A stretch of 64,000 bases of DNA from the sequence record ON529860.1. One strand, given 5' to 3'. The notes beneath the pieces are model-generated. The model made no database searches, had not been told where the DNA came from, and was given only the letters and a program-made list of their open reading frames with translations. This document shows positions 418 through 24,671 of this stretch, piece by piece. A program made the position numbers and the translations under genes. Position 1 is the stretch's first letter. Every line of letters starts with the position of its first letter.

Positions 418-545
418 CGCGGGTGGTCCCTTGCGGTGGTTTGTTCCCTTATACATAGGGGACAGAAGTTAACAAGAGGTTAAGACGCGAAAGTTTTTTG
501 GGCGGGGCAGGCGGGCGTTAACCTTAACGACGGGTTAATGGATCA

Positions 546-563
546 GCGGCCCCGAAGGGCCGC
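546..563 (-). terminator. GC hairpin with UUCG loop (example of the cassette terminators)
   Basis: GCGGCCC-TTCG-GGGCCGC just after stop at 569. Related hairpins recur near 10850,11720,14130,18620,20370,21900 (CGCCC(C)GGC-TTCG-GCCGG(G)GCG family) and 9355,16383,19227 (CCGGGTTGTCTCCCCCGG family). Confidence 0.7.
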
Positions 564-568
564 CCCTG

Positions 569-988
569 TCAGGCCGCGACCGGCTGGCGCAACAGGGTCC
601 ACAGGCGGTCCATCGCCTTGTTGACGACGTGGGGCGACCCGACGCCGAACGGCGTGACGTTGACCACGTCGGCGGACTTCCAGACATAGGCCCGGATCGT
701 CGCGACGCGGGGTCCGTGCGGCGGCTGTTCGGTGGTGACGAACAGGGTCACGCCCAAGCCGTGGAAGTCGTAGAAGCCGCCGGGGAACTTCGTGCCGAAG
801 CCCTTCATGGCGCCTTTGTCGAACCAATGGCCGCGACGGCGGCGGTCGTAATCGCGCTCGATGTTGGCGAGGCAATTGCTCGATCCCTCGAAGGCCGGGC
901 CTTCGTGCGGCGCGGGGGCGGCGGCGGCCAGCAAGCCCGGCAGGGCGGCGGCGGCGGCGAGGGCGATGCGTTCGGCTTGGGTGGTCAT
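569..988 (-). CDS. hypothetical protein, 139 aa
   Basis: ORF with GGAGA RBS, promoter at 1030, hairpin after stop. Confidence 0.8.
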   Translation of the reverse strand: MTTQAERIALAAAAALPGLLAAAAPAPHEGPAFEGSSNCLANIERDYDRRRRGHWFDKGAMKGFGTKFPGGFYDFHGLGVTLFVTTEQPPHGPRVATIRAYVWKSADVVNVTPFGVGSPHVVNKAMDRLWTLLRQPVAA

Positions 989-1135
989 GGTCGTCTCCGG
1001 TTTGATAGGTCCAACCTACAGGGGAGAAGTTAACAAAGCGTTAACGGCCGTCAAGGCCTTTCTGGCCGCGCGTTAAGGTTAACGGCGGGCGGGCGACAGG
1101 GATGCGCCCCGGCGCGAGGCCGGGGCGATCCTGGG

Positions 1136-1456
1136 TCAGCCGATCAGGCGCGTCTTGAGCGTCGCCCGGCCTTCCGGCGTCAGCTTGGCGCGTTGGGCGC
1201 GGAGGAAGTCAAGCCCCTTTTGATAGGAGTCGATCCTGCCGCCGTATTGGCGCTCCAACCACTTCAACGGCTCCGGGTAATGCGAGGCGTAGAAGGCCAC
1301 GCGACCCGGCCTGATGCGGGGGAACAGCTTGGCGCGGGCCTCTTTGATCGAGGTCGCGCCGGGGACGGGCAGTTCCGCGACCACGCGCCCCTTGCGGAGG
1401 ATATGGGCCGTGTTCAGTTCCGGCGCGTAGGCGTGGCGTTCGAGGATCAGTTTCAT
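1136..1456 (-). CDS. hypothetical protein, 106 aa
   Basis: RBS, promoter at 1499, hairpin after stop. Confidence 0.8.
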   Translation of the reverse strand: MKLILERHAYAPELNTAHILRKGRVVAELPVPGATSIKEARAKLFPRIRPGRVAFYASHYPEPLKWLERQYGGRIDSYQKGLDFLRAQRAKLTPEGRATLKTRLIG

Positions 1457-1509
1457 CGGTCGTCTCCGTTTCGATCCTTAGACCATAGGCGACAGAAGTT
1501 AACAAGAGG

Positions 1510-2151
1510 TTAAGAGGTGAAGTTTTCCAGATAGCGGCGGCGCATCCCCGCAACCGTCGTCGGCGTGACCCGGACAATGTCGGCGTTTTTGCGCATCATG
1601 TCCGCCCGCATGAACGACGTCGTCGCCAATTGCAGGGTGTGATTCACGCAGGAATGATAGCCGTCTTTCAGGCGTTCAATCGGCCACGTCGCCGGATGCA
1701 GCTTGGCGCGTTCCAAGGTCTCCAACGGGATAGGCACGGCGAGGTCGTCGCGATGCTGATCGGACTCCGTCCGCTCATAGGTCGCGCCGCGCGGATAGAC
1801 GCCCAAGATCAAATCCCCGTTGTTCAGCCGGAACCACGTCAGGCCGGAACGCCCGTCGTCGTCAACCGCTTGCGCCAGCACGTAGCGGGCCACGGCGGCG
1901 TCCGCCGGGACGGCCCACGCCACAACCGAATCGAGCATATTGCCGTCTTCGTCATGGGCGAAGATCGCGGACGGGGGGCCAGGTTCCTCCACGACGCCGG
2001 ACGGGTCTAGGCCATAGCGCCCTTCGAGCCAGACGGCGCGGGCCATGGTCAGGCCGTCGCGATAGGCGTCGCGTTCGGCCTCCGTCTCAAAGGGGCCGTG
2101 CAGGACGTTCGCCGGGCAACGCATGTAAAAGCCAACCGCTGAATCGGTCAT
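1510..2151 (-). CDS. hypothetical protein, 213 aa
   Basis: RBS, promoter at 2194; TAA stop lies inside the next CtrA box. Confidence 0.8.
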   Translation of the reverse strand: MTDSAVGFYMRCPANVLHGPFETEAERDAYRDGLTMARAVWLEGRYGLDPSGVVEEPGPPSAIFAHDEDGNMLDSVVAWAVPADAAVARYVLAQAVDDDGRSGLTWFRLNNGDLILGVYPRGATYERTESDQHRDDLAVPIPLETLERAKLHPATWPIERLKDGYHSCVNHTLQLATTSFMRADMMRKNADIVRVTPTTVAGMRRRYLENFTS

Positions 2152-2258
2152 CGGGGTCTCCCTTGATTGAGCCTCCTGTCTAGCACTGATTCGTTAACAA
2201 GAGGTTAACGTCGCGGAACGGACGGGCGTTAACCTTAACGGGCGGTAAGGGTAGAACG

Positions 2259-2489
2259 TCACCGGACAGGCCGGTAACGCTCCACGGGATAAGAGCCCGC
2301 TTTGGTGTAGATGGCGTAGGCGCCGTCGGCGTCGGGACCCAGGCAGGCAAAGGCGCCGCGCGAGGCATTGCGATTGCGCCGGTAGAACAGGGCGAGGAAT
2401 CCTGCGGGCGTTTTGGCTGCGGTCTCTTCAAGGTCCGGCAAGTCGCGGGAGCGACCATCCTCATAGTCGGTGACACTGTAGCGTTTCAA
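2259..2489 (-). CDS. hypothetical protein, about 76 aa (TTG start)
   Basis: GGAGG upstream of TTG, promoter at 2533. Confidence 0.65.
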   Translation of the reverse strand: MKRYSVTDYEDGRSRDLPDLEETAAKTPAGFLALFYRRNRNASRGAFACLGPDADGAYAIYTKAGSYPVERYRPVR

Positions 2490-2597
2490 GGGGCTTCCTC
2501 CATTGCTGCCCCATTCTTGTAGCACTGATTCGTTAACAAGAGGTTAACGCGTTTCGGCGGTGGGCGTTAACCTTAACGGGCGTTAGGAAAGCCAGGG

Positions 2598-3008
2598 TCA
2601 CAGGCCCCGGCAGGTGGGACCGAACCCGGACTCGATCGACACGGGATCGGTCAGGGGCAGGGCGCAGCGCCCGCAGCGGCCCTCATGATAGACCTTGAGG
2701 GCGGGCGGGATGCGCCCGGCGGCGAGGTGGGGCCACGCCCACGCGAAGGCGCGCGCGGACGGGGCGTCGGCGCCGATGGGGGCGCGGCGGCCATGCCGGA
2801 ACGAATCATCAGCGAAGATCGTGCCGAGGAAGGTGTAGTCGGCTTCGTTGTCCGCGCCGGTCAGGACCGACACGAACCAGACGCTATCCTTGGCGCCCAC
2901 GCGATAGGTGTAGCGGGCGCCGGTGGCCTCGCTGACCAGCGTGACGCGGGCGCGACCGGCGAGCATGAAGCGGCGGACGTTCTCGGCGGACATTTCAGCG
3001 GCGGACAT
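2598..3008 (-). CDS. DUF6011-like protein (C-terminal Cys motif)
   Basis: C-terminus CGRCALPLTDPVSIESGFGPTC resembles the DUF6011 signature. Confidence 0.7.
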   Translation of the reverse strand: MSAAEMSAENVRRFMLAGRARVTLVSEATGARYTYRVGAKDSVWFVSVLTGADNEADYTFLGTIFADDSFRHGRRAPIGADAPSARAFAWAWPHLAAGRIPPALKVYHEGRCGRCALPLTDPVSIESGFGPTCRGL

Positions 3009-3148
3009 GGGGTCGGCTCCGGGCGGGTGATCCTGTCACCCTAGAGCCGATTCGTTAACAAAAGGTTAAAGACAGATCGACGCCGGGACGCGTTAAGGTT
3101 AACGGCGGGCGGGCGCGGGAAGCCGCCCGGCGAACCGGGCGGCGGGGG

Positions 3149-3658
3149 TCACGGGGCCAGAGGATCGGGAGCCGGGATGATCTCGACGTGTCGCCTGCCC
3201 TGCTTGACGCGCCCGACCTTGATTCGCTTCTCGGCGGCGGCGCGCGCCCATTCGGTGCGCGTGGTCTCGGCGGCGTGGCGGCCCGTCTCATCAACGGCGC
3301 TATAGATGGAATAGAGCAGGCCGAACAACGCGACCTCCGGCATGGCCTTGATCGCCTCCAGCATTTCGCCGTTGTCATAGGCCCCGGACACTTCCACGAC
3401 GCGGGTGCCGGCGCCGTGGTGCATCAGGATATAGAAGGTCGATTTGCGGTCGCGGCGGCGCTCGCTTTCGCCGGTGCGGCGGACGGCCAGCTTGACGTCA
3501 TAGGCGCGGTAACAGACGCCGGTCCCCGGCTTGCCGTTGTCGCTTCCCAGGATGCGCATTTCGCGTTCCGGCAGGGGATGACGCAGGACCTCGAAGGGCT
3601 CGAAAGTCGTGTCGTCGGCGTAGCCCGATCCACGGGCGATGATGGCGCTTTTCAGCAT
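3149..3658 (-). CDS. hypothetical protein, 169 aa
   Basis: GGAGA RBS, hairpin after stop. Confidence 0.8.
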   Translation of the reverse strand: MLKSAIIARGSGYADDTTFEPFEVLRHPLPEREMRILGSDNGKPGTGVCYRAYDVKLAVRRTGESERRRDRKSTFYILMHHGAGTRVVEVSGAYDNGEMLEAIKAMPEVALFGLLYSIYSAVDETGRHAAETTRTEWARAAAEKRIKVGRVKQGRRHVEIIPAPDPLAP

Positions 3659-3712
3659 GAGGGGTCTCCGGTTGCGGGCCTGTTGAGAGACAGGCCCGGC
3701 GTGAATAGGGGC

Positions 3713-4150
3713 TTAACCCGTGATGTCTTCGGTGCGGTCGCGCAGGGCCTCGGCGTAGGTGTCGAAGGGCGCCGATTCGGCCTCTTGTTCTGCGTCATAC
3801 CAATGGAACCGCTTGACCGGGGCGGCGTCTTCCGTCGCGCCGGGGTAGGTGCGCTGAAAGACTTCCAAGTCGTCCAGATCGCCGTCTTCCGGGTCCAGTT
3901 GCAGGTTGAGGGGCGCGGGCGCCTCTGGAACCTTGCCGCTCGAATAGACGTCCACACAGACGCCCATGAAGGTCGCGATTTCGGTCGCCTGCGTCAGAAA
4001 CTGGCGTTGATACGAATCGGGCAGGGCTTGAGCCACGGCCACGGCGAAGGCGTCCGAGGCGAGGCACCAGACCAGTTCCGTAAAGGTCTCGACGCCGTCG
4101 TCCATGTCGGCGTAACCGATGACGGTGTAAAAGGCGGGGCGTTCAGCCAT
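3713..4150 (-). CDS. hypothetical acidic protein, 145 aa
   Basis: RBS, promoter at 4193. Confidence 0.8.
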   Translation of the reverse strand: MAERPAFYTVIGYADMDDGVETFTELVWCLASDAFAVAVAQALPDSYQRQFLTQATEIATFMGVCVDVYSSGKVPEAPAPLNLQLDPEDGDLDDLEVFQRTYPGATEDAAPVKRFHWYDAEQEAESAPFDTYAEALRDRTEDITG

Positions 4151-4340
4151 GGGGCTCTCCTGTTGCGTTGGGGATACCCTAGTCCGCAGAAGTTAACAAT
4201 AGGTTAAGATGCTGAAGATTTCCCGGCGGGCGGGGCGGGCGTTAACCTTAACGCGCCGTTAACCTTAACGGCGGACGGGCAGGGGCGGCCCCGGCCTAGA
4301 GCCGGGGCGCCGGGGCGGCGTCGTTCCGCCCCGTTCCCTG

Positions 4341-4538
4341 TCAGTCTTCGTCCGGGCGATAATCCGGGGCGGGATCGAAGCGACCGCAGAAGGTGCGGCC
4401 CTCCGATTCCATGCCGGGCTCAAAATCCCGGATGACGTAGAGCGCCCGGCCCACGGTGTTGAGGTTGAGCACCGCCACCGGGGCGCCCTTCCGGTTTGCG
4501 GTGCGTTGCGCGTCGCGCTTGACCTGATCGAGGCCCAT
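4341..4538 (-). CDS. hypothetical protein, 65 aa
   Basis: 3 nt after upstream stop; hairpin after stop. Confidence 0.7.
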   Translation of the reverse strand: MGLDQVKRDAQRTANRKGAPVAVLNLNTVGRALYVIRDFEPGMESEGRTFCGRFDPAPDYRPDED

Positions 4539-4541
4539 GGG

Positions 4542-4910
4542 TCAGCCCTCGTAACGGTCGTGAACCGAAACCGGGCCGCCGAAGCGGGGACCGCCGAGGC
4601 GTTCCACGGCTTCGTTGAAACGGCTGTCCGTCGTTCCGGCGTAGTTGCCGCCCGCCATCAGCCAGCGCGTGTCCATCTCGCCGGTGTCCGTCGCCGGGAC
4701 GATCTTGACCGCGCCGGGGACGTTGCCCTTGACCAGATAGGCGGCGGGGCGCGCCGGGTTGGGATCGAACGGGCCATCGACGTTGACCAAGGTCAGTTGC
4801 GCGACCTTGGACGACACGCCGCCGTTGGTGCAATCCACCGAGTCCAGCTTGATGATGTCGCCGGGGTGGTCGGCGGCGGCGCGGCGGTAGATGGAAACGA
4901 TCAGGCCCAT
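4542..4910 (-). CDS. conserved phage hypothetical protein (DCTNGGVS...GGNYAGTTDSRF motif)
   Basis: Motif pattern familiar from phage early-region proteins; AGGAG RBS; promoter at 4955. Confidence 0.75.
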   Translation of the reverse strand: MGLIVSIYRRAAADHPGDIIKLDSVDCTNGGVSSKVAQLTLVNVDGPFDPNPARPAAYLVKGNVPGAVKIVPATDTGEMDTRWLMAGGNYAGTTDSRFNEAVERLGGPRFGGPVSVHDRYEG

Positions 4911-4984
4911 GGGGCTCTCCTTTGTTTTGACCTTCACACCATAGCGCGAAGGTCTTAACAAGAGGTTAACGCCGGAAAGATTTT

Positions 4985-5152
4985 TCAGGCGGCGGAAAAC
5001 AGCGCGGCGGTCGAGACGCCGCCCAGCAGGGCGCGGCGGAACGGGTCGAGCGCGAGCGCCGGGGCGGCCTTGGCCTTGCGGGCGCGCGGCTTGGGGGCGG
5101 CCTTCGCGGCGGCGGGCTTGCGGGCGCGGGTCGTCTTCGGGGCGTCGGTCAT
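4985..5152 (-). CDS. 55-aa Lys/Ala-rich peptide ending in a Tat-signal-like segment
   Basis: Own degenerate promoter at 5209; basic N-part followed by FRRALLGGVSTAALFSAA. Confidence 0.65.
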   Translation of the reverse strand: MTDAPKTTRARKPAAAKAAPKPRARKAKAAPALALDPFRRALLGGVSTAALFSAA

Positions 5153-5310
5153 GGCGGGGCCTTTCAGCAGGGGTTGAAGTCCAGAGCCCCCAGCCTCGCA
5201 CTGATTCCTTACCAAAGGATTAACGGGCCAGGCCGCGCCGGGCGGGCGTTAACCTTAACGGCGCGGGCGGGACCGTTAACCACGGCGGAGGGGTCCGCCG
5301 TGGTCGTGGG

Positions 5311-5649
5311 TCACTTCACCCCGGCGATGATCGAGCAATCGCCGTAAAACTTGCCTTGGAACGGCAGGCAGTCGCCTTGCGGGGTGATGTGGTGCTCAAT
5401 CCAGAACCGGTCGTCGCCCTCGACCTTGGAGCCGTGCGCGTTGCTGTAGCCCTTGGCTTCCCACTCGGCGATGACTTCGGGGAAGGCGGCGCGGAAGGCC
5501 TCGCGCTCCATGGCGAACTTGAGTTCGCTCATGTAGGTGATCTGGATATAGCGGAAGGGGCCGATGGTCGGGCCTTCGAATCCCCAGTCTTCCATGTTTT
5601 GATCGGCGTCATCGCGGCCATGGAACAGGCGCAGGTGAACGTCGGACAT
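5311..5649 (-). CDS. hypothetical protein, 112 aa
   Basis: AGGAG RBS, promoter at 5694. Confidence 0.8.
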   Translation of the reverse strand: MSDVHLRLFHGRDDADQNMEDWGFEGPTIGPFRYIQITYMSELKFAMEREAFRAAFPEVIAEWEAKGYSNAHGSKVEGDDRFWIEHHITPQGDCLPFQGKFYGDCSIIAGVK

Positions 5650-5826
5650 TGGTCGTCTCCTCTTTCGATACAGACCACTATAGAGGCGATTCGTTAACAA
5701 GGGGTTAACGCCGGGACGATTTTTCGGGGGCGCGGGCGGGCGTTAACCTTAACAGCGCGTTAACCTTAACGACCGGTTTACGCCCCCGTTAACCATGGCG
5801 GGGGCGCCGCCATGGTCGGGGTCCGA

Positions 5827-6078
5827 TCAGGCCGCCGGGGGCGGCGGGATCGGGTGGCGCGCGGCGAGGCTCTTGGCGGTCCACGCGTCGGGGGTCGAGA
5901 GGTCGTAGGCCTCGGCGAACAGGCGGGCGCAGTCCTGCACCGTCTCGCCCGTCAGGTGGTCTTCATACCAGCTACGCAGTTGGTCTTCATCGGCCCCGGC
6001 GTCGCGGTAGTCGATGCCGTAGCCCGCCAGCAGGGCGGCGTTGGCGGCGGCGAGCCAGAGTTCAAACGTGGGATACAT
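5827..6078 (-). CDS. hypothetical protein, 83 aa
   Basis: RBS, promoter at 6125. Confidence 0.75.
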   Translation of the reverse strand: MYPTFELWLAAANAALLAGYGIDYRDAGADEDQLRSWYEDHLTGETVQDCARLFAEAYDLSTPDAWTAKSLAARHPIPPPPAA

Positions 6079-6266
6079 CGGGCGTCTCTCCTTGTTCCGA
6101 TGCTTAGACCATATCCGGCAGAAGTTAACAAGAGGTTAAGACCGGAAAGATTTTTCAGGGGTCGTCCGGGGCGGCGTTAACCTTAACAGGCCTTAAGGTT
6201 TTGTTAAGGTTAACGGGCGGGGCCTGGAAATGGTTAACGGCCGTTAACCACTCCCCTTAACCGTCC

Positions 6267-6551
6267 CTAGTTGGGACGGTCGTCGACGAACTCGATTTTC
6301 TGTTCCGTCGTGGCGATCAGGGCCGTGACGTCGGCGATGGCGTCGTCCAGTTTGGCGGCGCCCTTGTAGGTCTTGCCGGTCCAGCCGCCGACCATCGCCA
6401 GCAGGTTCTTGGCGGTGTAGGCCCGGTTGACCTTCATGCCGATCTTGAGGGCGCGCAGGCCTTGGCGAACAACGATCATCTGGTAGCGGGTGATGGCCGC
6501 GCCGGTGTGGGTGACGGCGCCGTGTTCGGAGATGTGGACTAGATCGGTCAT
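6267..6551 (-). CDS. hypothetical protein, 94 aa
   Basis: Promoter at 6596, plausible composition. Confidence 0.75.
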   Translation of the reverse strand: MTDLVHISEHGAVTHTGAAITRYQMIVVRQGLRALKIGMKVNRAYTAKNLLAMVGGWTGKTYKGAAKLDDAIADVTALIATTEQKIEFVDDRPN

Positions 6552-6747
6552 GTCTGTGTTCCCTTGTTGGTGAGATCACTATAGCGACCCAGTTCTTAAC
6601 AACAAGTTAAAATCGAAATAGATCGTGCTTAACGGGAATGGTTAATTTTTCGGGGCTGGGCGTTAACCTTAACAAGAGGTTAACGGCTGTTAAGGTTAAC
6701 GCCGGAGGGTCAGGCGAGACCGCCCCGGCGAACCGGGGCGGCGGGGA

Positions 6748-7371
6748 TCAGCCCAGTTGAATCGTGCCGTCGTCGGCGGTGTAGAGATAGACTTCTTCGG
6801 GGTATTTTTGCGCGGCTTCCGTCAGGGCCTCGCCCTCCGCTTCGGGCCAGTCGCCGTCTTCCCAGAACCCGACGCCGTTACGGGTCCGGGTCATGTAGAA
6901 GTCATATCCGGCCTGCTCTTGCACCGAACAATTGACCGCGCGGACCTCGCCCGACGCATAGGCCGCTTCCAAGGTGGCGGCGTTCTCGCGTTGGAAGCGT
7001 TCGCAGTCCGCGACCATTTCGCGCAAGCCGTCCGGGTGAATCTCTTCCGGGCAAATGGTGTTGTCACGGTCCGAATCGGCGGCGGGGTGTCCGGTCGGAT
7101 ACTCGGCGCCGTTCGAGGCGGCGGCGCCGATGTAGCCCCGCGTGAACGGATCGCACGGCGTCAGGACGGCCCAGGCATCGGCTTCATAGGCGGCGCGCGC
7201 CTTGGCGTTGGCCTCTTCGAGGGCGTCCACAACCGCGCGGGCTTCCGCGACCAGAGCGGCGGGTTCGGTGTGCGGAAATTGCATCACCGTCAGGGCGGCG
7301 ATCTGTTGCGCCGTCAGGGGGCTGTAGTCGGGGACCGTGGTTTCGGCGGTCAGCTTGGCGAGGGTCGTCAT
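6748..7371 (-). CDS. conserved phage hypothetical protein (AGYDFYMTRxRNGVGFW motif)
   Basis: Resembles the common phage motif GHDFWLTRNGHGAGFWD; promoter at 7416. Confidence 0.75.
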   Translation of the reverse strand: MTTLAKLTAETTVPDYSPLTAQQIAALTVMQFPHTEPAALVAEARAVVDALEEANAKARAAYEADAWAVLTPCDPFTRGYIGAAASNGAEYPTGHPAADSDRDNTICPEEIHPDGLREMVADCERFQRENAATLEAAYASGEVRAVNCSVQEQAGYDFYMTRTRNGVGFWEDGDWPEAEGEALTEAAQKYPEEVYLYTADDGTIQLG

Positions 7372-7738
7372 GGGGTTGCTCCCGTTGATGTGCGGGCATA
7401 TTGCACGCCAAGGTCTTAACAACAAGTTAACGCCGCGTAGATTTTTCAGGGCGGGCGGTCGTTAAGGTTAATGCGAAAGACTCGCACAGGGCGGCGTTAA
7501 CCTTAACGGAATCGTCCGAAAAATTAACCATGCCCGTTGACGCTTTCTTAACGACTCGGCGCTAGGCTCAAGGGTTCCATAGCCACGCCTCGCGCCGGGT
7601 CCGACCCCCCGCGCGCGGTGTCACGCGCTCGCCTCATCCGGGGCGGGGCGCCCGGCCACGCGCCCCGACATCAGGAGGCGCGAGCCCGCCCGGCTGGGCG
7701 GTCGATCGGTCATGCCGGCGACCGCCAGGGCGGGGGTG

Positions 7739-7918
7739 CGTCGAATCGAAACGGCGTCAGGTCAAGTCGGCCGGCGTCGAAACGAAACGGCGTCAGGTCA
7801 AGTGCGTGCGCGTCGAATCGAAATGGCGTCAAGTCAAGTTCGCTTGCGTCAAATCGAAATGGCGTCAGGTCAAGTGCGCTTGCATCAAATCGAAACGGCG
7901 TCAGGTCAAGTGCGCGGG
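7739..7918. repeat. 5 x 36-bp tandem repeat (CGTCRAATCGAAAYGGCGTCARGTCAAGT...)
   Basis: Units start at 7739,7775,7811,7847,7883; no spacers. Confidence 0.95.
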
Positions 7919-8007
7919 CGTCAAGTTCGCCTGGGCGGGACGCGCCGACGCCCGGCGGGCGAATGCCGACCGGGCGTCTTTTGATCAGGCGGGAGCCCGA
8001 TGAATTC

Positions 8008-8214
8008 GAGTCACGGAACCTAAAAACAGAGTCCGATGAGCACGAGGGCGAAAACCATCTTCGACGCGCTACAGAGTTTATCGAGCATATTCAGGGGCTT
8101 CCTTCTACTACGGAGTCACGTCTGGTGGAAAACGTGACAGGGAACCGCCGGAGTCATCGTTGGGGGCTAAACTGACTCCGAATTGGAGTCACGTCTGGTG
8201 GAAAACGTGACTCC
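8008..8214. repeat. GAGTCACG motif cluster with GAGTCAC-N14-GTGACTC palindromes
   Basis: Copies at 8008,8113,8151,8186; perfect 10-bp inverted repeat at 8185-8214; 27-bp direct repeat at 8112/8185. Confidence 0.9.
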
Positions 8215-8226
8215 GGGGTTTCGGTT

Positions 8227-9210
8227 TCAGGCCTCGGCTTGGAGGACGACCGTGGCGGCGGTCGTGCGGCTGGCGAACTGCTCGCTCGCGATGTCCCCCT
8301 TCAGACCCTCAAAAGCCATGATGCTCGCCCGCAGGTCCGGGGCGATGTAGTCGGTCCCCTCAGCGGTCGCGTCCGCCTGAAACAGGTCCAGCAGGCGCGC
8401 CCGCACCCCGGCGGCGTCGTCCGCATAGAGGATCGGCGCACCCTCTTGCTCGGGCTCGATCCGATACGGGCGGCGCTCCAGCCTAAGGTCGAAGGGTCCG
8501 CTCCACGTCTTGACTTCGGGCGGCGCCAGAGCGGCGTCGATCAGGGAGTCGCAGAGGTCCTTCGACAGGTCAGCGCAGGCGTCGGCCTCATTCTGCGAGA
8601 CGTAGAAGGTGTGACGGGCCTCATCGACCGCCAAGGCGTGATCGGCCACCCAGGCCTGGCCTTGGAAGGTCGCGCGGTAGGGCAGGGTCTCGGGCGCCGG
8701 CTGGGCGGGCGCCGGGGGATCGCGGTCCAGCCAGTAGCGGTAGAGGGCAGCCCACGCCCGCGCGCGCTGACGGTCGCCCGTCGTGGGCAGGTAGGCGTCG
8801 TGCAGGGCCTCGGCGGCGGCGGTGCGATCCGGCGTGTCCGGATCGGCCTGATCCGCATCAAAGGCGTCGAAGGTCAGCAGGACGGCCTGCGTATGGCGGG
8901 CGGTCCACTCACCGGCAGGACCTGCCGCCAGAACCTCGCGCACCTCGGGGAGCGTCAGGTGGGAAAACCGGGCAGGGTCCCCGGCGATAAATTCCGAAGG
9001 GTCCCCGACCTGCGATTCGGCAGGGTCCCCGGTGATGAATTGCGCAGGGTCCCCGGCGATGGATTCGGCAGGGTCCCCCCGCTCGATTCCGTCCGCGATG
9101 ACGTAGAGCCGGCCGATCAGGCCTTGGGCGGCCTCCGGCGTGGGGTTGTGGCGCAGCGCCAGCACTTGGGCGGCGGCGGCGCGGATCAGGGCGGGATAGG
9201 TGGTGCTCAT
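8227..9210 (-). CDS. hypothetical protein, 327 aa, with 5 x 8-aa GDPxxxxx repeat
   Basis: AGGAG RBS, promoter at 9263; repeat encoded by 24-bp GGGTCCC units at 8975-9077. Confidence 0.75.
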   Translation of the reverse strand: MSTTYPALIRAAAAQVLALRHNPTPEAAQGLIGRLYVIADGIERGDPAESIAGDPAQFITGDPAESQVGDPSEFIAGDPARFSHLTLPEVREVLAAGPAGEWTARHTQAVLLTFDAFDADQADPDTPDRTAAAEALHDAYLPTTGDRQRARAWAALYRYWLDRDPPAPAQPAPETLPYRATFQGQAWVADHALAVDEARHTFYVSQNEADACADLSKDLCDSLIDAALAPPEVKTWSGPFDLRLERRPYRIEPEQEGAPILYADDAAGVRARLLDLFQADATAEGTDYIAPDLRASIMAFEGLKGDIASEQFASRTTAATVVLQAEA

Positions 9211-10864: not shown

Positions 10865-11611
10865 TCACTTGACCGGGGGCAGGTTGCGCAGATCGACGGT
10901 CGGCGGGGCGCCGTCCTTGGCGACCTTGGCGGCTTGGAGGATCGACTCCATCAGGGTCTTGGTCGCCGTGCCGGCGCGCAGACGGGCCGCCGCATCGGTC
11001 GATTCGACGTCATCAGGGATGATGGTCGGCGCCGCCTTCAACGCCTCCAGACAGGCCTTCATCGCGGCTTTCGCGCCGAGGGTGGCTTGCGCCGCCGCCG
11101 TGCGAAGGGCGGCGGCGTAATCGCCCTGCTCTTCGTCCGCCATCTGCAAGAGACGGTCCTGCTCCTTCAGCAACCGCGCCGCCTCATGGGCGGTGATGGC
11201 GATGGCGTTGGGCAGGGCTTGGGCCTCCTTGGCGTAGAGGGTCAGCAGCCGGGCCGCCTCCTCGGCGTCTTCGGCATAGACGGCGCCGGCGTCCGACCAG
11301 TTGTTGACCAGCACCGCCATGGCGGCCTCGGCGGCATAGTGAGGCAGGGAGGAGCCGCTGCCGATGTCTTCCAGCTTCTGGCACAGGCGCAGGGTCAGGG
11401 GGTCGGTGTTCTGGGCCAGGGCGAGGGTCAGGAACTCAGGCTGGACCTGAAACTCCGTGACGCAACCGGCGTCGTCGTCCGCCGACAGGCCTTCGGCGTC
11501 CCTGTAGTTCTGAATGGCGAACTCCAGCGAGCGTCGCACATGGGCGGGGTCCACCGCGCCGCCTTCGATCTGCAAGCTGACGATGTAGTTGATGTTGACG
11601 GGTGCGGTCAT
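10865..11611 (-). CDS. hypothetical protein, 248 aa
   Basis: AGGAG RBS, promoter at 11657. Confidence 0.8.
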   Translation of the reverse strand: MTAPVNINYIVSLQIEGGAVDPAHVRRSLEFAIQNYRDAEGLSADDDAGCVTEFQVQPEFLTLALAQNTDPLTLRLCQKLEDIGSGSSLPHYAAEAAMAVLVNNWSDAGAVYAEDAEEAARLLTLYAKEAQALPNAIAITAHEAARLLKEQDRLLQMADEEQGDYAAALRTAAAQATLGAKAAMKACLEALKAAPTIIPDDVESTDAAARLRAGTATKTLMESILQAAKVAKDGAPPTVDLRNLPPVK

Positions 11612-11749
11612 CGGTGTCTCCTGATGTGGCGTTGATCCTGTCCTAGCACCGATTCGTTAACAACAAGTTAACGCCACACTGCGAAACGCTCGCGTTAACC
11701 TTAACGGCCGGCGCCCCGAAAACGCCCCGGCCGAAGCCGGGGCGCAGGA

Positions 11750-12070: not shown

Positions 12071-12125
12071 GGGTGTCTCCCGGTGGTTGATGATCTGACC
12101 CTACAGGCCAGAGGTTAACAAGCGG

Positions 12126-12545: not shown

Positions 12546-13147
12546 GCGGCGACCTTGCGCGGGCGGGTCGCCAGATCGGGCACCGTATCCATGAAATCGA
12601 GATAGGCCAGAGCGCGGTCGGCGTCGGACAGGAATTCGGCGTAAACCTCGGGCTTCTCGCGCGGTGAGAGGATTTCACCCGCGACCAGACGTTGACGGTG
12701 CGCAACCAGCAGCGGGCGCGCCGCGTCCAGTTCAGCGCGCAACGTCGGGGCCTCGCGCAGTCCTGCCCGCACGAAGGCGATGTCGGGTTGATAGCCGGAG
12801 CCCCAGCCCGACCAGATCACGTCCGACCGATAGTCGCTGAACGACGGCGCAGGATCGACCTCGACACAGCGGGTTCCGTCCGGCAGCTTGTCGAGGGCGG
12901 CGCCGGTGAAGTGGTGAATCAGCGGGCCGATCCAGTTTCCCATCATCACGCCGTCGGCGGCGGCGGTTCCCCGGCCGGTCGAGACGGACCCGGCGGGCGT
13001 GACATCGACCCAGTTGGGGGCGTCATAGAGAATCTTGATCCTCAGGGTGTTCGTGGTGTGCTGGATCAGAAAATACTCGGTCCCGTCCGGGCCGACGATC
13101 TTGTGCGTCGGCTTGGACAGCTTGGCGCTCGGGGGCAGGAAGGCCAT
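12542..13147 (-). CDS. hypothetical protein, 201 aa
   Basis: AAGGAG RBS, promoter at 13189. Confidence 0.8.
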   Translation of the reverse strand: MAFLPPSAKLSKPTHKIVGPDGTEYFLIQHTTNTLRIKILYDAPNWVDVTPAGSVSTGRGTAAADGVMMGNWIGPLIHHFTGAALDKLPDGTRCVEVDPAPSFSDYRSDVIWSGWGSGYQPDIAFVRAGLREAPTLRAELDAARPLLVAHRQRLVAGEILSPREKPEVYAEFLSDADRALAYLDFMDTVPDLATRPRKVAA

Positions 13148-14902: not shown

Positions 14903-15034
14903 TAGCGGTCAGAGGTTAACAAGAGGTTAACCGATGGTGTAGCGGCGCCAGATTTGTTGCCCCAGCATGACGGCGAACACCGCCAGCATGACCAGCACGG
15001 TCACGACCAGGGTCCGGGGTCCGGGGCGGGCCAT
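14903..15034 (-). CDS. small single-TM peptide, 43 aa (MARPGPRTLVVTVLVMLAVFAVMLG...)
   Basis: ATG overlaps upstream stop; hydrophobic core; not in ORF track. Confidence 0.45.
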
Positions 15035-15657: not shown

Positions 15658-16269
15658 TCAGGACAGGTCGCCGGTGACGCCGTCGAAGGGCTGGGCGCCC
15701 GCTGCGACGTCGCGCGCTTGGGCCTCGGTCAGGTTCTTGGCGATGGTGTAGCGTTCGCCGCCTTGCACCTCATCGACATACCAATAGGCGCCGCGTTCGG
15801 AGTATAAGGAGGTGCGCTCGCCTTCGCGGTCCTCCTTGATCGTCAGGATCGGGTCGTCTTCGCCGATGCGGTAGAGATAGACCGACACATCGCGGTCGGG
15901 CTGGGCGAAGCCCTGCTGATTCCAGATCATCCCGGCGAAATGCTCGGCGGCCTCGCGCTCCCGCGTGTCGGCGATCCGGTTGTCCAGCACCGTGTCCGTG
16001 CGGTGGTCGAAGGCGACGACGCGGAAGCCGGGCAGGGCGGTGGGCTGCACCGTGAACTCATAGCGCACGTCTTCTTCGGCGATCCAGTGGCTGATGTCTT
16101 CGATGGTCGGCAGCAGATCGTCCGGGGCGTCGTTGTCGGCTTGCAGTTCGCGCACGACGTCGTTCAGGGCCTCAGCCTCGCTGACATGGATCGAGGCGCC
16201 CAGGCCGCCCGAAGTGGACGTGACCAGAATGACCAGGGCGGGCAGGCCGGAAATGGCGGAAAGCTTCAT
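15658..16269 (-). CDS. hypothetical protein, 203 aa
   Basis: AAGGAG RBS, promoter at 16311. Confidence 0.8.
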   Translation of the reverse strand: MKLSAISGLPALVILVTSTSGGLGASIHVSEAEALNDVVRELQADNDAPDDLLPTIEDISHWIAEEDVRYEFTVQPTALPGFRVVAFDHRTDTVLDNRIADTREREAAEHFAGMIWNQQGFAQPDRDVSVYLYRIGEDDPILTIKEDREGERTSLYSERGAYWYVDEVQGGERYTIAKNLTEAQARDVAAGAQPFDGVTGDLS

Positions 16270-16410
16270 GGGGGTCTCCTTCGTTGAGGCTCCCTTGTCG
16301 CACGGATTCGTTAACAAGAGGTTAACGCGGCGCGTTTATTTTCCGTTAAGGTTAACGGCCGGGCGGGGGCCGAAAAAGCCCGCCGGGGGAGACAACCCGG
16401 CGGGCTCGGT

Positions 16411-16967: not shown

Positions 16968-16969
16968 GG

Positions 16970-17344: not shown

Positions 17345-17404
17345 GCGGGGTCTCCTTCCCGGTGGTCGATGGGCTGACCCTACAGGCCAGAGGTTAACAA
17401 GAGG

Positions 17405-17941
17405 TTAATCGGCGAAGATTTCCGACAGGGGCGGGATGATTTTGTAGGGGATCGCCTCGACGCTGGCCTTGTTGAAGGCGCCCAGATAGGTCTTGTAGTA
17501 GCGGGCGCGCTTGCCGTCCGTCATCAGCTTCCACTTGGTCGCGTGACCCGGAATCCACTGCTGATTGTCGGCGGCCTCAATCGCGGCGATGAACTGATCG
17601 ACGGTCATCCCGTCGTGGTCCTGCCGGGTCGGGGAGATGCTGTTCAGTTCGTGCCAGGGGTGGTCGTCGGCGTAGTGGGCGCCGCCGCCGTCGCTGGACC
17701 ATGAGGCCGATTCCATCCCCAGCAGGACGGGCAGGAAGTCGTCGCCGTCGCCGGTCAGCAGGGAACAGACCTTGACCGCCTGCTCCATGGTCATCAGGCC
17801 ATCCAGAATGAACTCCAGATGCTCCTTATAGTTGGAGGCGTCGCGATACATATAGGACAGGCGCGTGTTCTGCCCCGGATGGCCCGCCCAGACGGACGGG
17901 TTGATCTGGTGGGGCAGGGCGGCGGGGGTCAGGTCGGTCAT
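17405..17941 (-). CDS. conserved phage hypothetical protein (YMYRDASNYK motif)
   Basis: Motif familiar from phage proteins; RBS; promoter at 17994; stop inside CtrA box. Confidence 0.8.
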   Translation of the reverse strand: MTDLTPAALPHQINPSVWAGHPGQNTRLSYMYRDASNYKEHLEFILDGLMTMEQAVKVCSLLTGDGDDFLPVLLGMESASWSSDGGGAHYADDHPWHELNSISPTRQDHDGMTVDQFIAAIEAADNQQWIPGHATKWKLMTDGKRARYYKTYLGAFNKASVEAIPYKIIPPLSEIFAD

Positions 17942-18004: not shown

Positions 18005-18487
18005 TTAATCGGCGGCGGAGACTTTGAGGTCCACCCCAAAGACGTGAACCAGTTCGCCGCTCGGCTTGCGCACGATCACGCCCAGCCACTGCTCCTCGAC
18101 AAAATAGCCCGTCACCTCGGCTTCGCCGATGCGATTGACGGCGACGCGCACGGTCGCGCCGACCTGGGGCGGTGAGTCCTCGCCGGACCACAGGACCGCG
18201 CCTTCGATGCCCGGCGGAAGCAGGCGGCCGTCTTTCCAGCGCGCCAGTTCATAGGCGGGCAGGTGCGGACGCCACAGGGGCGCATAGACATCCATCAGCC
18301 ACGACGGGCCGTAGGTGTTGCGGATCGCGCGCAGGAGATTGCCCGCGTCCTCCTGCGTGTCGCCGCCGGTGGCCCACAGGACGGTCAGATGCTCTTTCCA
18401 ACCGCCTTCGACCTTGGCGTATTTGTCGGCGAAGTTCAGCAGGGCGGCGGACGCCTCGGGCGTCAGGGCGGGGTAGGTGTCAGGCAT
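18005..18487 (-). CDS. hypothetical protein, 160 aa
   Basis: RBS, promoter at 18531; stop inside CtrA box. Confidence 0.8.
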   Translation of the reverse strand: MPDTYPALTPEASAALLNFADKYAKVEGGWKEHLTVLWATGGDTQEDAGNLLRAIRNTYGPSWLMDVYAPLWRPHLPAYELARWKDGRLLPPGIEGAVLWSGEDSPPQVGATVRVAVNRIGEAEVTGYFVEEQWLGVIVRKPSGELVHVFGVDLKVSAAD

Positions 18488-18641
18488 GGGGCGTCTCCCT
18501 TGTTCGATGATCCCTTGTAGCGGCGATTCCTTAACAAGAGGTTAACGCCGCGACAAGGGCGTGCGGCGTTAACCTTAACGCGGTGTTTAGGTTAATGCGG
18601 TCAGATCGCAGGAAGGTCCCCGGCCGAAGCCGGGGACGGGA

Positions 18642-19106
18642 TCAGGCGGCGTCCTTGTATTTGGGGAACTTGGCGATCAGGGCGGCGACCGTCTCCTCGA
18701 CCGACTTCATGTTGGGGAAGTAGTGGTCGGCCGGATCGGCGAAGTCCAAAGCGAAGTCGCAGATGAAGGGAATCGCGTCCCACTGCCAGCAGCGGCAGCA
18801 GTCGAACCAGTCCCGCCCGTCTTGATTGTAGGCGGTCCAGACCGCCTCGAAATAGGGGCCGAGGCGCATCATCACGTCGCGCATCTCGGCGGAGCCGTAG
18901 CCGTCGATGGCGTCGTCCCAGCGGGCGAAGGCCGCACGCAGCGGCTTGTCTTTGGTGCGGGCGTTGCGCGGGTCGAGGGCGTGACAGACATACTCCCACG
19001 CCGCCATGGACGCGTGGATCGCGCCGGGCGGATAGCTGGCTCGCATCTTGCAATACTTCTTGGCCGTGGGCGTGGGTTTGAACGTGCTGCGGTGCTTATA
19101 GGGCAT
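18642..19106 (-). CDS. hypothetical protein, 154 aa
   Basis: GGAGG RBS, promoter at 19153. Confidence 0.8.
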   Translation of the reverse strand: MPYKHRSTFKPTPTAKKYCKMRASYPPGAIHASMAAWEYVCHALDPRNARTKDKPLRAAFARWDDAIDGYGSAEMRDVMMRLGPYFEAVWTAYNQDGRDWFDCCRCWQWDAIPFICDFALDFADPADHYFPNMKSVEETVAALIAKFPKYKDAA

Positions 19107-19264
19107 GGGGCGTCTCCTCCCGGTTGATCCTAGCGACCATAGGGCCGAATCGTTAACAATAGGTTAACGCCGCGCGACTTAATTCGCTGTTAAGGTTAAC
19201 GGCCGGCGCTAGGGAAAGGCGCGCCACCGGGGGAGACAACCCGGCGGCGCGACAGGCGGCGGCC

Positions 19265-20812: not shown

Positions 20813-21057
20813 CAGGCGCCGATCCGGTGGGCCGGGCAGAAGCCCGTCACGACCTTGACGCGACCGCGCTTGAAGCCGGGGCGCAGGGCGCGCGCCGAGC
20901 GTTCGGCGTCGGCGGTCTTCATGTGACCGCAGGCGCAGGACGCGCCGGGGTCGCGGGTCTGGGCCTCGCGCACCTTGTCGGCGCCGGCCTGTGTGCCGAG
21001 CCAGCCGCAGAAGGGCTCGCCGCCGACCGTGATGTGAGCGGGTTGGGTGTTCGTCAT
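20812..21057 (-). CDS. hypothetical Cys-containing protein, 81 aa
   Basis: AGGAGG RBS. Confidence 0.7.
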   Translation of the reverse strand: MTNTQPAHITVGGEPFCGWLGTQAGADKVREAQTRDPGASCACGHMKTADAERSARALRPGFKRGRVKVVTGFCPAHRIGA

Positions 21058-21066
21058 CGGGGCCTC

Positions 21067-21264
21067 CTATAGGTTCAGGGCGGCGTCGAACGCCTGGGAT
21101 TGCAGTTTCTTGGCGGCTTCGGCCTCGGCGGGGTAGAGCCGGGCCAGGCCGTCAAAGCGTTCTTTCTGATGCGAGCGCTCGCCCTCGGCGGCGGTCATAT
21201 GCATGACCTCGCCCCACAGGTGGGCCATTTCGAGGATCAGGACAGAGCGGCGGGAAGCGTTCAT
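21067..21264 (-). CDS. hypothetical protein, 65 aa
   Basis: AAGGAG RBS, promoter at 21306. Confidence 0.7.
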   Translation of the reverse strand: MNASRRSVLILEMAHLWGEVMHMTAAEGERSHQKERFDGLARLYPAEAEAAKKLQSQAFDAALNL

Positions 21265-21316: not shown

Positions 21317-21793
21317 TTAACAGCGGCGAAGCATTTCGCGCATCAGGGCTTCCTCGTTGCGGGCGATGTCCAGCGCGGCGCGGTCGTGGCCTTGCTCATG
21401 CGCCTGCTTGGCCTGCTGTCGGCAGATGTCCTGGCGCTTGCGGATGTCGGCCTCCGACAGGGTGCGGAACAGGGCGTCGGCCTCCTGATCGACCTTGACG
21501 GTCCAGTGCTGCTGCGATTCGTCGTCGGCGCGGAGATGGGCGGGGAAGTAGAGGTCCGCCACGTCCTGTGCGAAGAACGACCCGTCGTTGCCGATCTTGA
21601 GCAGTTCGGCCTCGACCTCGACCGGCGCGATCTCTTCGGCGGCGACGACCGTATAGGCGCCGATCCCGTCGCCGTCGGTGATGAAGTGGGCGATGTCCGC
21701 CAGCGTCATGTCCGCGACCAGCCGCTCGGCGGCGGCGGTGTCGGCGGCGTGATACACGACCAGGGAGAGTGTCGTCTTGATGATCTTGGGCAT
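21317..21793 (-). CDS. hypothetical protein, 158 aa
   Basis: AAGGAG RBS, promoter at 21835; stop inside CtrA box. Confidence 0.8.
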   Translation of the reverse strand: MPKIIKTTLSLVVYHAADTAAAERLVADMTLADIAHFITDGDGIGAYTVVAAEEIAPVEVEAELLKIGNDGSFFAQDVADLYFPAHLRADDESQQHWTVKVDQEADALFRTLSEADIRKRQDICRQQAKQAHEQGHDRAALDIARNEEALMREMLRRC

Positions 21794-22818: not shown

Positions 22819-22871
22819 CGGTGTCTCCCGTGGTTGAGCGTCTGGTGTAGCCGAGATTCGTTAACAAGAGG

Positions 22872-23063
22872 TTAACGCGGCGTGTTTTTCTCGATCCAGG
22901 TTTCGGCGGCGCGGCGCGTCTGGCGCATGGCGGCGAAGGTGTGGCGCACCTTCCCGTCCGGTCCCGGCGGCGGCACGAACTCGCCCGCGCTGACGATGGC
23001 GTAGTAGGGGCCGTGACCGGAGAAGAAGTCGTAGTATTCGACGACGCGGTGCGGGGGTTCCAT
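22872..23063 (-). CDS. hypothetical protein, 63 aa
   Basis: AAGGAGG RBS; stop inside CtrA box. Confidence 0.7.
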   Translation of the reverse strand: MEPPHRVVEYYDFFSGHGPYYAIVSAGEFVPPPGPDGKVRHTFAAMRQTRRAAETWIEKNTPR

Positions 23064-23098
23064 CGGGCCTCCTTGGCAGGGGTTGTGTCGGGCTGGGC

Positions 23099-23458
23099 TC
23101 AGCTTAGGCGGGCGAGGATTTCGTCGTTCGTCATGGTGTCCATCAGGGCCTGGACCCGCTGGGCCTTTTCATCCTCGACCGCCTGGGCCGCCGTCTTGGC
23201 GCGGCGATGCTCGGCCAGCGCCGCCTTGCCGGCCTCGGTGGTCTCCGGGTCGATGGTCATGTAAAGGCTGACCTCGCGGCCCTGACGGTCCACGAAGGTC
23301 AGGCTTCCAGACGGCCGCACCTTGACGGTGAAGTGATGCTTGACCAGACGCTCGGCGGTCTCCTGACCGAAGTCGCCGCCGAAGCAGCCGCCCGCCGCCT
23401 TGACGGTGTTGTCGCTCTTGAGCCGGGTGTGATAGCCGATGTTCTTATGGGCGTGCAT
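23099..23458 (-). CDS. hypothetical protein, 119 aa
   Basis: AAGGAG RBS before MHAHKNIG. Confidence 0.75.
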   Translation of the reverse strand: MHAHKNIGYHTRLKSDNTVKAAGGCFGGDFGQETAERLVKHHFTVKVRPSGSLTFVDRQGREVSLYMTIDPETTEAGKAALAEHRRAKTAAQAVEDEKAQRVQALMDTMTNDEILARLS

Positions 23459-23468
23459 GGGGCGCTCC

Positions 23469-23807
23469 TTAGAAGGGAATGTCGTCGTCGAACGACGGGG
23501 GCGGGGCGTAGGTCTGGGCGGCGCGCGCGCGGCGGGCGGCGTCCATCTCGGCGCGCTCCTCGTCCGTCGCGCTCCAATACTCGTCGTCTTCCGGGTGGGC
23601 GCCGGGCTCGCCGCGATAGTGCGGGTTCTTGACCCACGCATCCAGCGGATGCAGCAGCCATTCCTGATCCGGGACCTCGCGGCCTTCCGTGTGCGCGAAG
23701 CCCGACACGGCCAGGCTCATGTATTCGCCCTGGCTCAGCGACTCCATCGCCAGAGCGTCTTCCTTTTCGCGGCGGGCCTCTTCGGCCATTTCGATCACAT
23801 CGCGCAT
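23469..23807 (-). CDS. hypothetical acidic protein, 112 aa
   Basis: AAGGAG RBS, promoter at 23849. Confidence 0.75.
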   Translation of the reverse strand: MRDVIEMAEEARREKEDALAMESLSQGEYMSLAVSGFAHTEGREVPDQEWLLHPLDAWVKNPHYRGEPGAHPEDDEYWSATDEERAEMDAARRARAAQTYAPPPSFDDDIPF

Positions 23808-23983
23808 CGGCGTCTCTCCTTGTGAGCCCCCTTTATGCCAGACAGAAGTTAACAACAAGTTAACGCCGACGCTTTTCTGCATTTTCTTCGGGCGGCGGCT
23901 GCGGGCGTTAACCTTAACGGCGTGTTAAGGTTAACGGTCGGGGTCCAGCCTGGGAAACGGCGTCCCGGAACGGGACGCCTCTC

Positions 23984-24052
23984 CTAGAAGGTGAGCAGGA
24001 TGACCAGCAGGGCCAGAAAGAGGCGGGAGGCGCCGGCCAGCTTGTCGATCAA
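23984..24052 (-). CDS. small single-TM peptide, 22 aa (MIDKLAGASRLFLALLVILLTF)
   Basis: TTG overlaps upstream TGA; hairpin follows. Confidence 0.5.
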   Translation of the reverse strand: MIDKLAGASRLFLALLVILLTF

Positions 24053-24519
24053 GTCGCGTTGTCCGCCTTCATCGCCGCGCACAGGGTCTCGACCAGCCGC
24101 TTGTGGCGCGCCAGAGCGGCGGGGTCCGTGCGGTCGCCTTGGAAGGGGACCAGCACCAGAGGTGTGGCCGAGGGGTCCAGCGCCCAGAAGATTTCCGTCT
24201 CGCCGTCCGTCATCTGGTAGGTGAAGACGTTCAGGTCGGCTGGGGCGTGGTCGAGGAAATAGACGCGTCCGTTGAACCGGGCGTTGAAGGGCTGTTCCGG
24301 CGTCGCCAAGTCGATCTCAGCCAGCACGGCGTCGCGCACGGCGTCAATCGGGTGGACGCCGTCTTCGCTGGTTTCATCAGGACGGGATTCGGCCTCGGCC
24401 TCCGCGTCGCGCTTGATGTCCTCGACCACGGCGGCGCGCGCCTCCTCCCAAGTCGCGCTGGCGCTGGGCTCCTCGTCGGGCATGAAGCCCGAGACGTTCG
24501 ATCCGGTCACATAAGGCAT
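24049..24519 (-). CDS. hypothetical protein, 156 aa
   Basis: RBS, promoter at 24567. Confidence 0.75.
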   Translation of the reverse strand: MPYVTGSNVSGFMPDEEPSASATWEEARAAVVEDIKRDAEAEAESRPDETSEDGVHPIDAVRDAVLAEIDLATPEQPFNARFNGRVYFLDHAPADLNVFTYQMTDGETEIFWALDPSATPLVLVPFQGDRTDPAALARHKRLVETLCAAMKADNAT

Positions 24520-24671
24520 CGGGGTCTCCCTTGTTGATGCGAGGCTGCAATCTACCCGACGAGGTCTTAACAAAAAGTTAACAGCGACGCAATCGCTTTT
24601 CTTCGCGGCGTTAACCTCTTGTTAACTTCTTCGTGGGATAAGGGACAGGTCAACAACACAGGAGATCGCCG

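Follow-up and report, generated by a model that had tools for sequence, protein, structure and literature searches.

A one-directional array of small, predicted early genes with repeated CtrA-box promoter and hairpin modules in Brevundimonas phage vB_BpoS-Papperlapapp

Modular exchange of phage genes mediated by promoters and terminators has already been published for T4-like phages, whose promoter-early stem-loop (PeSL) modules combine an early promoter, a stem-loop and a ribosome-binding site (RBS) (Arbiol 2010, PMC2839356; Comeau 2014, PMC4122927). A second precedent is provided by phiCbK-like phages, which carry clusters of CtrA sites ahead of small genes of unknown function (PMC9437464). 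Here, we describe an array of small, predicted early genes within a stretch of 64,000 nucleotides (nt), in the following referred to as the window, which matches positions 62001-126000 of record ON529860.1, the genome of Brevundimonas phage vB_BpoS-Papperlapapp, with 100% identity. This phage, a member of the Dolichocephalovirinae with a genome of 356,874 bp, was isolated on B. pondensis LVF1 (PMC10070969). Unless designated as record positions, coordinates of Papperlapapp refer to the window; those of the individual features are compiled in Table 1.

The array resembles the PeSL system in that there are about 50 composite units per genome, each comprising an early promoter, a stem-loop and an RBS, in that the modules are concentrated upstream of ORFans in hyperplastic regions, in that upstream stop codons reside within the AT-rich part of the module, and in that indels and replacements between relatives are joined inside modules. 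In contrast to the PeSL modules of T4-like myoviruses, however, the modules reported here are found in siphophages of Alphaproteobacteria, they form one contiguous array adjoining the genome terminus, and their hairpin precedes the promoter with an extra conserved element, Box B, in between. Moreover, the PeSL promoter conforms to the sigma-70 consensus while the one found here is a predicted activator-dependent CtrA-box promoter, and the formation of encapsidated mini-circles is a further trait of the PeSL modules. Because of the CtrA-box promoter and the affiliation of the phage with the Dolichocephalovirinae, the array appears to work like PeSL modules but is not a member of that family. 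The clusters of phiCbK-like phages share with it the subfamily, the position after the large terminase gene (terL), the TTAA-N7-TTAA sequence before small unknown genes and a homologous promoter sequence. Yet phiCbK possesses three such promoters per repeat compared to 46 in the Papperlapapp genome, and neither a regular module of terminator and Box B, nor indels at module boundaries, nor a switch of promoter class in a sister phage is described in PMC9437464. We consider it probable that the array represents the early genes (“ORFans”) at the terminus of a giant phiCbK-like siphophage, and that its CtrA-box promoter-terminator modules are regulatory in the first place and, in addition, serve as recombination substrates.

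Between positions 469 and 24625 of the window every coding sequence (CDS) lies on the minus strand and is annotated as hypothetical. While the initial annotation, made from the window alone, let the array start at 469, it actually runs about 10 kb further to the left and as a whole occupies, in one direction, about 35 kb of the genome (record 51,829-86,625). It is flanked by the large terminase gene (record 89,076-91,799) on one side and by peptidase and portal genes (47.9-51.0 kb) on the other. In phiCbK, the interval between terL and the portal gene is occupied by a direct terminal repeat of 10.3 kb, which carries gp1-20, and subsequently by gp21-41. Since it fills the same interval, the array is regarded as an expanded version of this terminal early region. 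A Pfam scan of the 43 proteins encoded by the window part of the array yielded two matches, both to domains of unknown function, and no function could be assigned to any of these proteins by PHROG and Pfam scans.

To describe the repeating unit, every intergenic spacer of the array was written out on the coding (minus) strand and compared. On this strand a GC-rich hairpin is followed by Box B (TTAACCTTAA, the core of CGTTAA-(CC/GG)-TTAACG), by a spacer of 11-40 nt which often contains a GAAAAATC-like A tract, and by a second conserved element, Box A. Box A in turn precedes a T which is conserved, a -10 element of the GCTA type, a leader of about 25 nt, the RBS GGAGAC, the ATG start codon and, finally, one to four open reading frames (ORFs). 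This comparison, together with the motif counts given below, confirms the succession of box, Shine-Dalgarno sequence, one to four short ORFs and hairpin which the initial annotation had recognised.

Box A reads TTAAC-N3-TTG-TTAA and thus fits exactly the canonical CtrA box TTAA-N7-TTAA. The pattern GTTAAC-N5-GTTAA shows 54 strand matches in the window, compared to 0 expected from shuffled sequences. Strict Box A occurs 46 times in the 357-kb record, always within the array, with 45 copies on the minus strand (record 51,829-86,581) and a lone plus-strand copy at record 86,611, which stands back to back with the last minus-strand site in front of the sole divergent gene. Alignment of the 45 minus-strand sites results in the consensus cG-TTAACcTcTTGTTAA-c...T....gcTA. 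At all of these sites Box A is co-oriented with the genes, its distance to the RBS is fixed and the -10 element is conserved. As the TTGTTA of the box is only 12 nt away from the TA of the -10 element, there is no -35 hexamer at working distance. Instead, with the conserved GCTA -10 element as reference, the CtrA box is predicted to cover about -38 to -24. This is the position where a class-II activator binds.

Sites of the Box A type are also present in the terminal repeat of phiCbK, where they are found three times per repeat, at 2594 (upstream of gp5), 8835 (gp18) and 9900 (gp20). Downstream of the gp18 and gp20 sites a “cTAkGGTC” region is common to phiCbK and the Papperlapapp promoters, and at 9900 the stop codon of gp019 is likewise supplied by the Box A-type site. 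For the promoter regions of gp5 and gp18, binding and activation by CtrA~P have been reported, the activity being lost in a ctrA-ts strain (Mascolo 2022, PMC9437464). In PMC11264516, the majority of CtrA-activated promoters are described to feature a single site at -35. Pfam searches of the phage proteins revealed neither an OmpR-type winged helix-turn-helix domain (Trans_reg_C) nor a sigma-70 region 2 (Sigma70_r2), and the ORF at 54135-55100 (plus strand), annotated as “RNA polymerase”, encodes a 321-residue chain of helix-turn-helix (HTH) motifs (HTH_23, HTH_28, Sigma70_r4-like) rather than a polymerase. For these reasons, host CtrA in conjunction with the host housekeeping sigma factor most likely reads Box A, as suggested by homology and geometry. 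In about one third of the promoters CGAATC or CGATTC comes directly downstream of Box A, at 5 nt (e.g. 2184-2193, 2523-2532 and 11647-11656). Either sequence includes the motif methylated by CcrM, GANTC, which thus lies ahead of the -10 element but behind the activator site, and promoter activity might sense the methylation state via this motif.

Generic scanners detected neither an enrichment of terminators (19 compared to 16.4 expected) nor of promoters (2 promoter-like sites compared to 2.6 expected). The former result is explained by the short T tails of the array hairpins. As the rules of such scanners are unsuited to high-GC hairpins or CtrA promoters, we instead folded the sequence from each stop codon up to the first box. 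Strong GC hairpins are present in about 24 spacers, with free energies (dG) of -18 to -44 kcal/mol and z-scores typically between -2 and -3.4. In agreement with the initial annotation they fall into few reused families, namely CCCGGC-TTCG-GCCGGG, a GGGTTGTCTCCCCC loop type and GGTTCGCC types, and TTTTC often follows directly 3' of the stem. The view of the initial annotation that the units are autonomous promoter-gene-terminator cassettes is supported.

A further peculiarity of the modules concerns translation. In seven genes the TAA stop is supplied by the leading TTAA of the Box A that follows, so that their last codons traverse the A-rich upstream element of the promoter and the encoded proteins terminate in tails such as ...LENFTS* or ...SEIFAD*. 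Six of these genes had been noticed before, to which the one at 14927 is added. The donation of the stop codon by the next box, as initially proposed, thus holds true, but the donating box is the CtrA-type Box A and not TTAACCTTAA. Also present, as noted earlier, are the recurring junction strings at 2181-2210 and 2520-2549 as well as at 12099-12122 and 17378-17401.

Four phages, Kabachok, Domovoi, Marchewka and Bambus, served for comparison as close relatives; in the array region their identity to the window amounts to about 88-98%. Clustering of the proteins of the five arrays resulted in 63 families which follow strictly the same order with no rearrangements, and no paralogy between cassettes was found in these arrays at E < 1e-5. 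The differences are confined to about 15 positions and consist in presence, absence or replacement of genes. These events were located by BLAST chains, and the switches of similarity were placed by three-way junction alignments. In eight of the nine simple cassette indels the crossover lies inside a duplicated module of 14-141 nt, which may comprise anything from an RBS/ATG junction to the whole module (Table 1). Taking all events together, 22 of the 28 breakpoints are situated in spacers or at most 15 nt from a gene end; this zone accounts for 27% of the sequence (binomial p = 2e-8). The expectation of the initial annotation that indel and replacement breakpoints should fall in the boxes is thus borne out in the main, gain, loss and replacement of cassettes between relatives occurring at the repeated modules. 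The postulated shuffling, however, is not seen among these colinear relatives; gene order changes only with respect to a more distant phage, Gurke. Not only cassettes but also parts of promoters differ between the close relatives: at several orthologous promoters solely a short subfamily-specific patch was swapped, e.g. CGAATC to CTTCTC or GACCTT, and at some of them Box A was altogether gained or lost.

Contigs from four public sequencing runs, representing phages about 90% identical to Papperlapapp, were compared with positions 1000-6999 of the window and display further indels at boxes. One of them has 463 extra nt between 3012 and 3091, one contains 71 nt in place of gene 5311-5649 (between 5261 and 5817), and a third lacks 2210-2629. 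The cassette 2181-2586 is thus absent from a public-run contig as well as from Marchewka. Joints at boxes that are short on one side (about 20 nt) were left out of the count as probable assembly artefacts. A search of public runs for reads of Papperlapapp itself found none, the best run sharing 0.08 of the sampled words. The four unrelated runs include isolate-labelled as well as metagenomic material, from which it follows that relatives of Papperlapapp occur in other samples. One difference between the close relatives is of another kind: an in-frame segment of 309 nt (12554-12862) within gene 12542-13147 is present in Papperlapapp and Bambus but absent from Kabachok, Marchewka and Domovoi. 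This domain-level indel ends 12 nt from an overlapping stop/start junction and not at a box.

Gurke, which infects the same host as Papperlapapp, exhibits a patchy nucleotide identity of 78-81%. Out of 68 Papperlapapp and 66 Gurke genes of the array, 36 are shared as reciprocal-best orthologues. Following the gene order of Papperlapapp, the Gurke coordinate descends eight times, with gene orientation always preserved, and one divergent gene has moved into the array. Hairpins and Box B are retained, while strict Box A is present only once. In Gurke, the module consists of Box B, an optional GTTAACCAT, TTTTCTGAAAAAGAGG, TTGACAC, a 17-nt spacer, TAGAAG, the RBS and ATG, in which TTGACA-N17-TAGAAG represents a canonical -35/-10 promoter. 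A comparison was feasible for 28 orthologous units. Every one of them has a CtrA box in Papperlapapp and TTGAC(A/C) in Gurke, and not a single unit has the same class in both. Since dozens of parallel point changes are implausible, exchange between modules, i.e. non-allelic conversion, provides the economical explanation. We tentatively put forward, at somewhat less than an even chance, that in two sister lineages on the same host the whole set of about 45 early promoters has been converted between a constitutive (Gurke) and a CtrA-dependent class (Papperlapapp group) by concerted exchange of modules, with the conserved TTAA-doublet box retained, possibly as a separate docking site. Such a PeSL-like plasticity engine in alphaproteobacterial jumbo phages would rewire the cell-cycle timing of the phage start.

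Box B, the element which outlasts this change, matches exactly at 40 positions of the window, 30 of them within 469-24625, compared to 0 expected from shuffled sequences, and 44 of the 46 copies in the genome are situated within record 53,049-88,800. It occurs in either orientation, single or paired at 17-35 nt, and always between hairpin and Box A; a pair 17 nt apart gives rise to a full TTAA-N7-TTAA between the copies. Two copies are present per terminal repeat of phiCbK, 45-50 in each of the close relatives and 41 in the array locus of Gurke. We also scanned IMG/VR for both boxes. The Box A consensus was found there in single copies only, and the matches to Box B are mostly chance singletons, to which two array-bearing contigs must be added. 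One of these, the unrelated-looking metagenomic contig L082 (IMGVR_UViG_3300025845_000015, 56% GC), accommodates 22 Box B copies in 11.9 kb. As in Gurke, Box B is often followed in L082 by GTTAACCAT, a classical CtrA half-site. The dense Box B arrays of L082 and of the second contig, L044 (about 55% GC), are made up of Gurke-type modules with Box B, GTTAACCAT, an A tract, TTGACC and CTAGAA, and since these are viral contigs from metagenomes the module family is wider than the Brevundimonas isolates. We regard Box B as a putative auxiliary site at which CtrA or its partner SciP would most likely dock, a phage factor being the other candidate.

The conservation of Box B across promoter types and lineages is also what might be expected if Box A, Box B or both were read by a DNA-binding protein of the phage instead of host CtrA. 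The multi-HTH protein encoded at 54135-55100, whose string of motifs includes one similar to sigma-70 region 4, offers itself as a candidate. Box A, however, is an exact CtrA consensus, the homologous phiCbK promoters respond to CtrA (PMC9437464), and the first genes to be expressed need host factors. We therefore rate a phage-encoded reader as rather unlikely and prefer host CtrA together with the housekeeping sigma factor.

Several points weigh against regulatory modules which are read by host CtrA and double as recombination substrates. The -10 element is assigned by conservation, and the CtrA reading is drawn from homology and geometry. The distance between Box B and Box A varies (11-40 nt) and Box B occurs in both orientations, which argues against a core promoter element. 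No recombination protein of the RecA, YqaJ or RuvC family was detected in the phage with Pfam. The control region at 27-64 kb is patchy in comparison to Gurke, too, so that no plasticity specific to the array is claimed. Finally, 6 of the 28 breakpoints are deep inside genes (12862, 15171, 15828, 20687, 21556 and 22614), and an accumulation of the surviving breakpoints in spacers would already result from selection against disrupted genes. These six breakpoints, along with several replacements which end exactly at start or stop codons without box homology (e.g. 24054-24516), would accord with modules that are purely regulatory, recombination being random and illegitimate and selection removing those indels which break genes. 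But selection against broken genes would not yield the homology of duplicated modules which is found precisely at the crossover in eight of the nine simple indels. Furthermore, both the promoters of the other class at all 28 comparable units in Gurke and the short patch switches among the close relatives require exchange between modules. Purely regulatory modules are thus quite unlikely, and regulatory modules which also provide homology for recombination remain our preferred explanation.

The initial annotation went further in the opposite direction and conceived the array as an integron-like system devoid of integrase, whose boxes primarily are recombination sites for capturing and shuffling autonomous genes. 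Indeed, cassette indels are bounded by modules, stop codons are built into the module, and the gene order differs from that of Gurke with orientation kept. Like an integron, the array is a one-directional row of small variable genes with repeated elements in between. Integron cassettes, however, are promoterless and share a common Pc, whereas here a directional Box A promoter belongs to every single unit and the repeats are transcription signals. Box A is phased with the -10 element and the RBS and matches the CtrA-dependent phiCbK promoters of gp5 and gp18 (PMC9437464), the five close relatives are colinear and free of paralogues, and Gurke retains the cassettes with another promoter, meaning that Box A acts as a regulatory part which can be replaced. 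Neither an IntI tyrosine recombinase adjacent to the array nor attC sites are present, the hairpins being GC-rich terminator-like stems. The initial statement that there is no recombinase is correct insofar as none is found in the array; the RuvC-like resolvase mentioned with it lacks support, since no protein of the phage matches RuvC in Pfam, and the ORF at 31474-31986, which is annotated as RNaseH, is without a Pfam match, too. Given the missing integrase, the missing attC sites and the separate promoter of each cassette, the array is not an integron, and boxes which exist for recombination in the first place are very improbable. The array can also be compared with the morons of lambdoid phages, which are autonomous promoter-gene-terminator units, too, and present or absent between relatives. 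Morons, however, are isolated insertions expressed from the prophage, while here the units form the bulk of the early region, share one repeated module and are accompanied by no supported integrase gene.

A few additional observations were made within and next to the array. An ORF encoding 54 residues (record 52448-52612), which is located inside the array and annotated as “integrase”, has no Pfam match and is kept in Gurke at 56% amino acid identity. A gene-free gap of 855 nt (7372-8226) contains inverted repeats of the type GGAGTCACG...CGTGACTCC as well as 36-bp iterons (7701-7922), of which there are five to six. Related 16-bp CGTCAAATC repeats are present at 25303-25549, where they lie within the annotated plus-strand CDS 25266-26189 and make this CDS look doubtful. 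Arrays of GGGTCCCC with a 24-nt period are present inside CDS 8227-9210 (8971-9090) and in the spacer 26506-26676. The two composite repeat sets, one at 7372-8226 and 8971-9090 and the other at 24950-26850, are about 17.5 kb apart and may represent the ends of a terminal repeat, an origin or a packaging site.

Table 1. Features of the array and of its variants in close relatives, in window coordinates.
Feature	Position	Strand	Remarks
Early-gene array (predicted), window part	469-24625	-	43 small genes, 31 strict Box A and 2 variants, 30 Box B, about 24 hairpins
Head of array, back-to-back Box A pair	24567-24625	.	sole plus-strand Box A upstream of divergent gene 24672-24917
Terminator hairpin (putative), CCCGGC-TTCG-GCCGGG family, then TTTTC	11716-11746	-	dG -29.0, z -2.6
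Genes with Box A-derived TAA stop	1510-2151, 12126-12545, 14927-15034, 17405-17941, 18005-18487, 21317-21793, 22872-23063	-	translation ends
Box A example, TTAACCTCTTGTTAA	2194-2208	-	CtrA box; TTGTTA 12 nt from TA of -10
Strict Box A, first T, window part 1	483, 1044, 1513, 2208, 2547, 3069, 4207, 4969, 5708, 6139, 6610	-	pattern match
Strict Box A, first T, window part 2	6683, 7430, 10778, 11671, 12129, 13203, 14048, 14930, 15563, 16325	-	pattern match
Strict Box A, first T, window part 3	17408, 18008, 18545, 19167, 20298, 21320, 21849, 22875, 23863, 24581	-	pattern match
Box B example, TTAACCTTAA	2229-2238	.	motif match
Gene 2259-2489 lost in Marchewka	2181-2586	-	67-nt direct repeats (Box B and Box A), crossover within repeat
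Whole module (hairpin, Box B, Box A, 5' untranslated region) duplicated, 127-141 nt	11601-11741	-	around extra 774-804 nt gene in Marchewka, Bambus and Domovoi
Box A promoter duplicated	17366-17408	-	extra 624-nt gene in Kabachok, Marchewka and Bambus; crossover between Box A and -10
Terminator hairpin duplicated	6721-6761	-	extra 246-nt gene in Marchewka
Cassette with gene 18642-19106, lost in Kabachok and Domovoi	18574-19177	-	junction inside Box B pair
Extra cassette in Marchewka	1068/1069		at Box B
RBS/ATG junction, 20 nt, duplicated	16267-16286	-	around extra gene in Domovoi
RBS/ATG junction, 14 nt	21055-21068	-	extra gene in Kabachok, Marchewka and Bambus
Gene only in Papperlapapp	22878-23090		at Box A, no junction homology

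The proposed mechanism starts from the one composite regulatory module which stands ahead of almost every one to four genes. Box A would take the place of a properly spaced -35 element, so that host RNA polymerase with its housekeeping sigma factor would initiate there only if phosphorylated host CtrA is bound. Early expression of the phage would thereby be linked to swarmer or predivisional cells, which are rich in CtrA. Each unit would be insulated from the others by the GC hairpins, and Box B would offer a second conserved docking site for a protein. Since about 45 near-identical, co-oriented copies are present within 35 kb, the modules at the same time constitute homology that is portable. 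Cassettes would be deleted, inserted or replaced, and promoters homogenised, when modules recombine unequally or non-allelically or undergo short-patch conversion with one another.

If this holds true, the array would make early gene expression of the phage depend on the cell-cycle state of the host at about 45 promoters at once. Gurke, with the same genes and the same host but with promoters of the constitutive type, constitutes the natural comparison by which a role of CtrA in “lytic deferment” becomes directly testable. Promoter-terminator modular exchange, so far described for T4-like myoviruses, would be extended to an unrelated phage lineage, and the array would provide an unusually clear case of the concerted evolution of regulatory elements.

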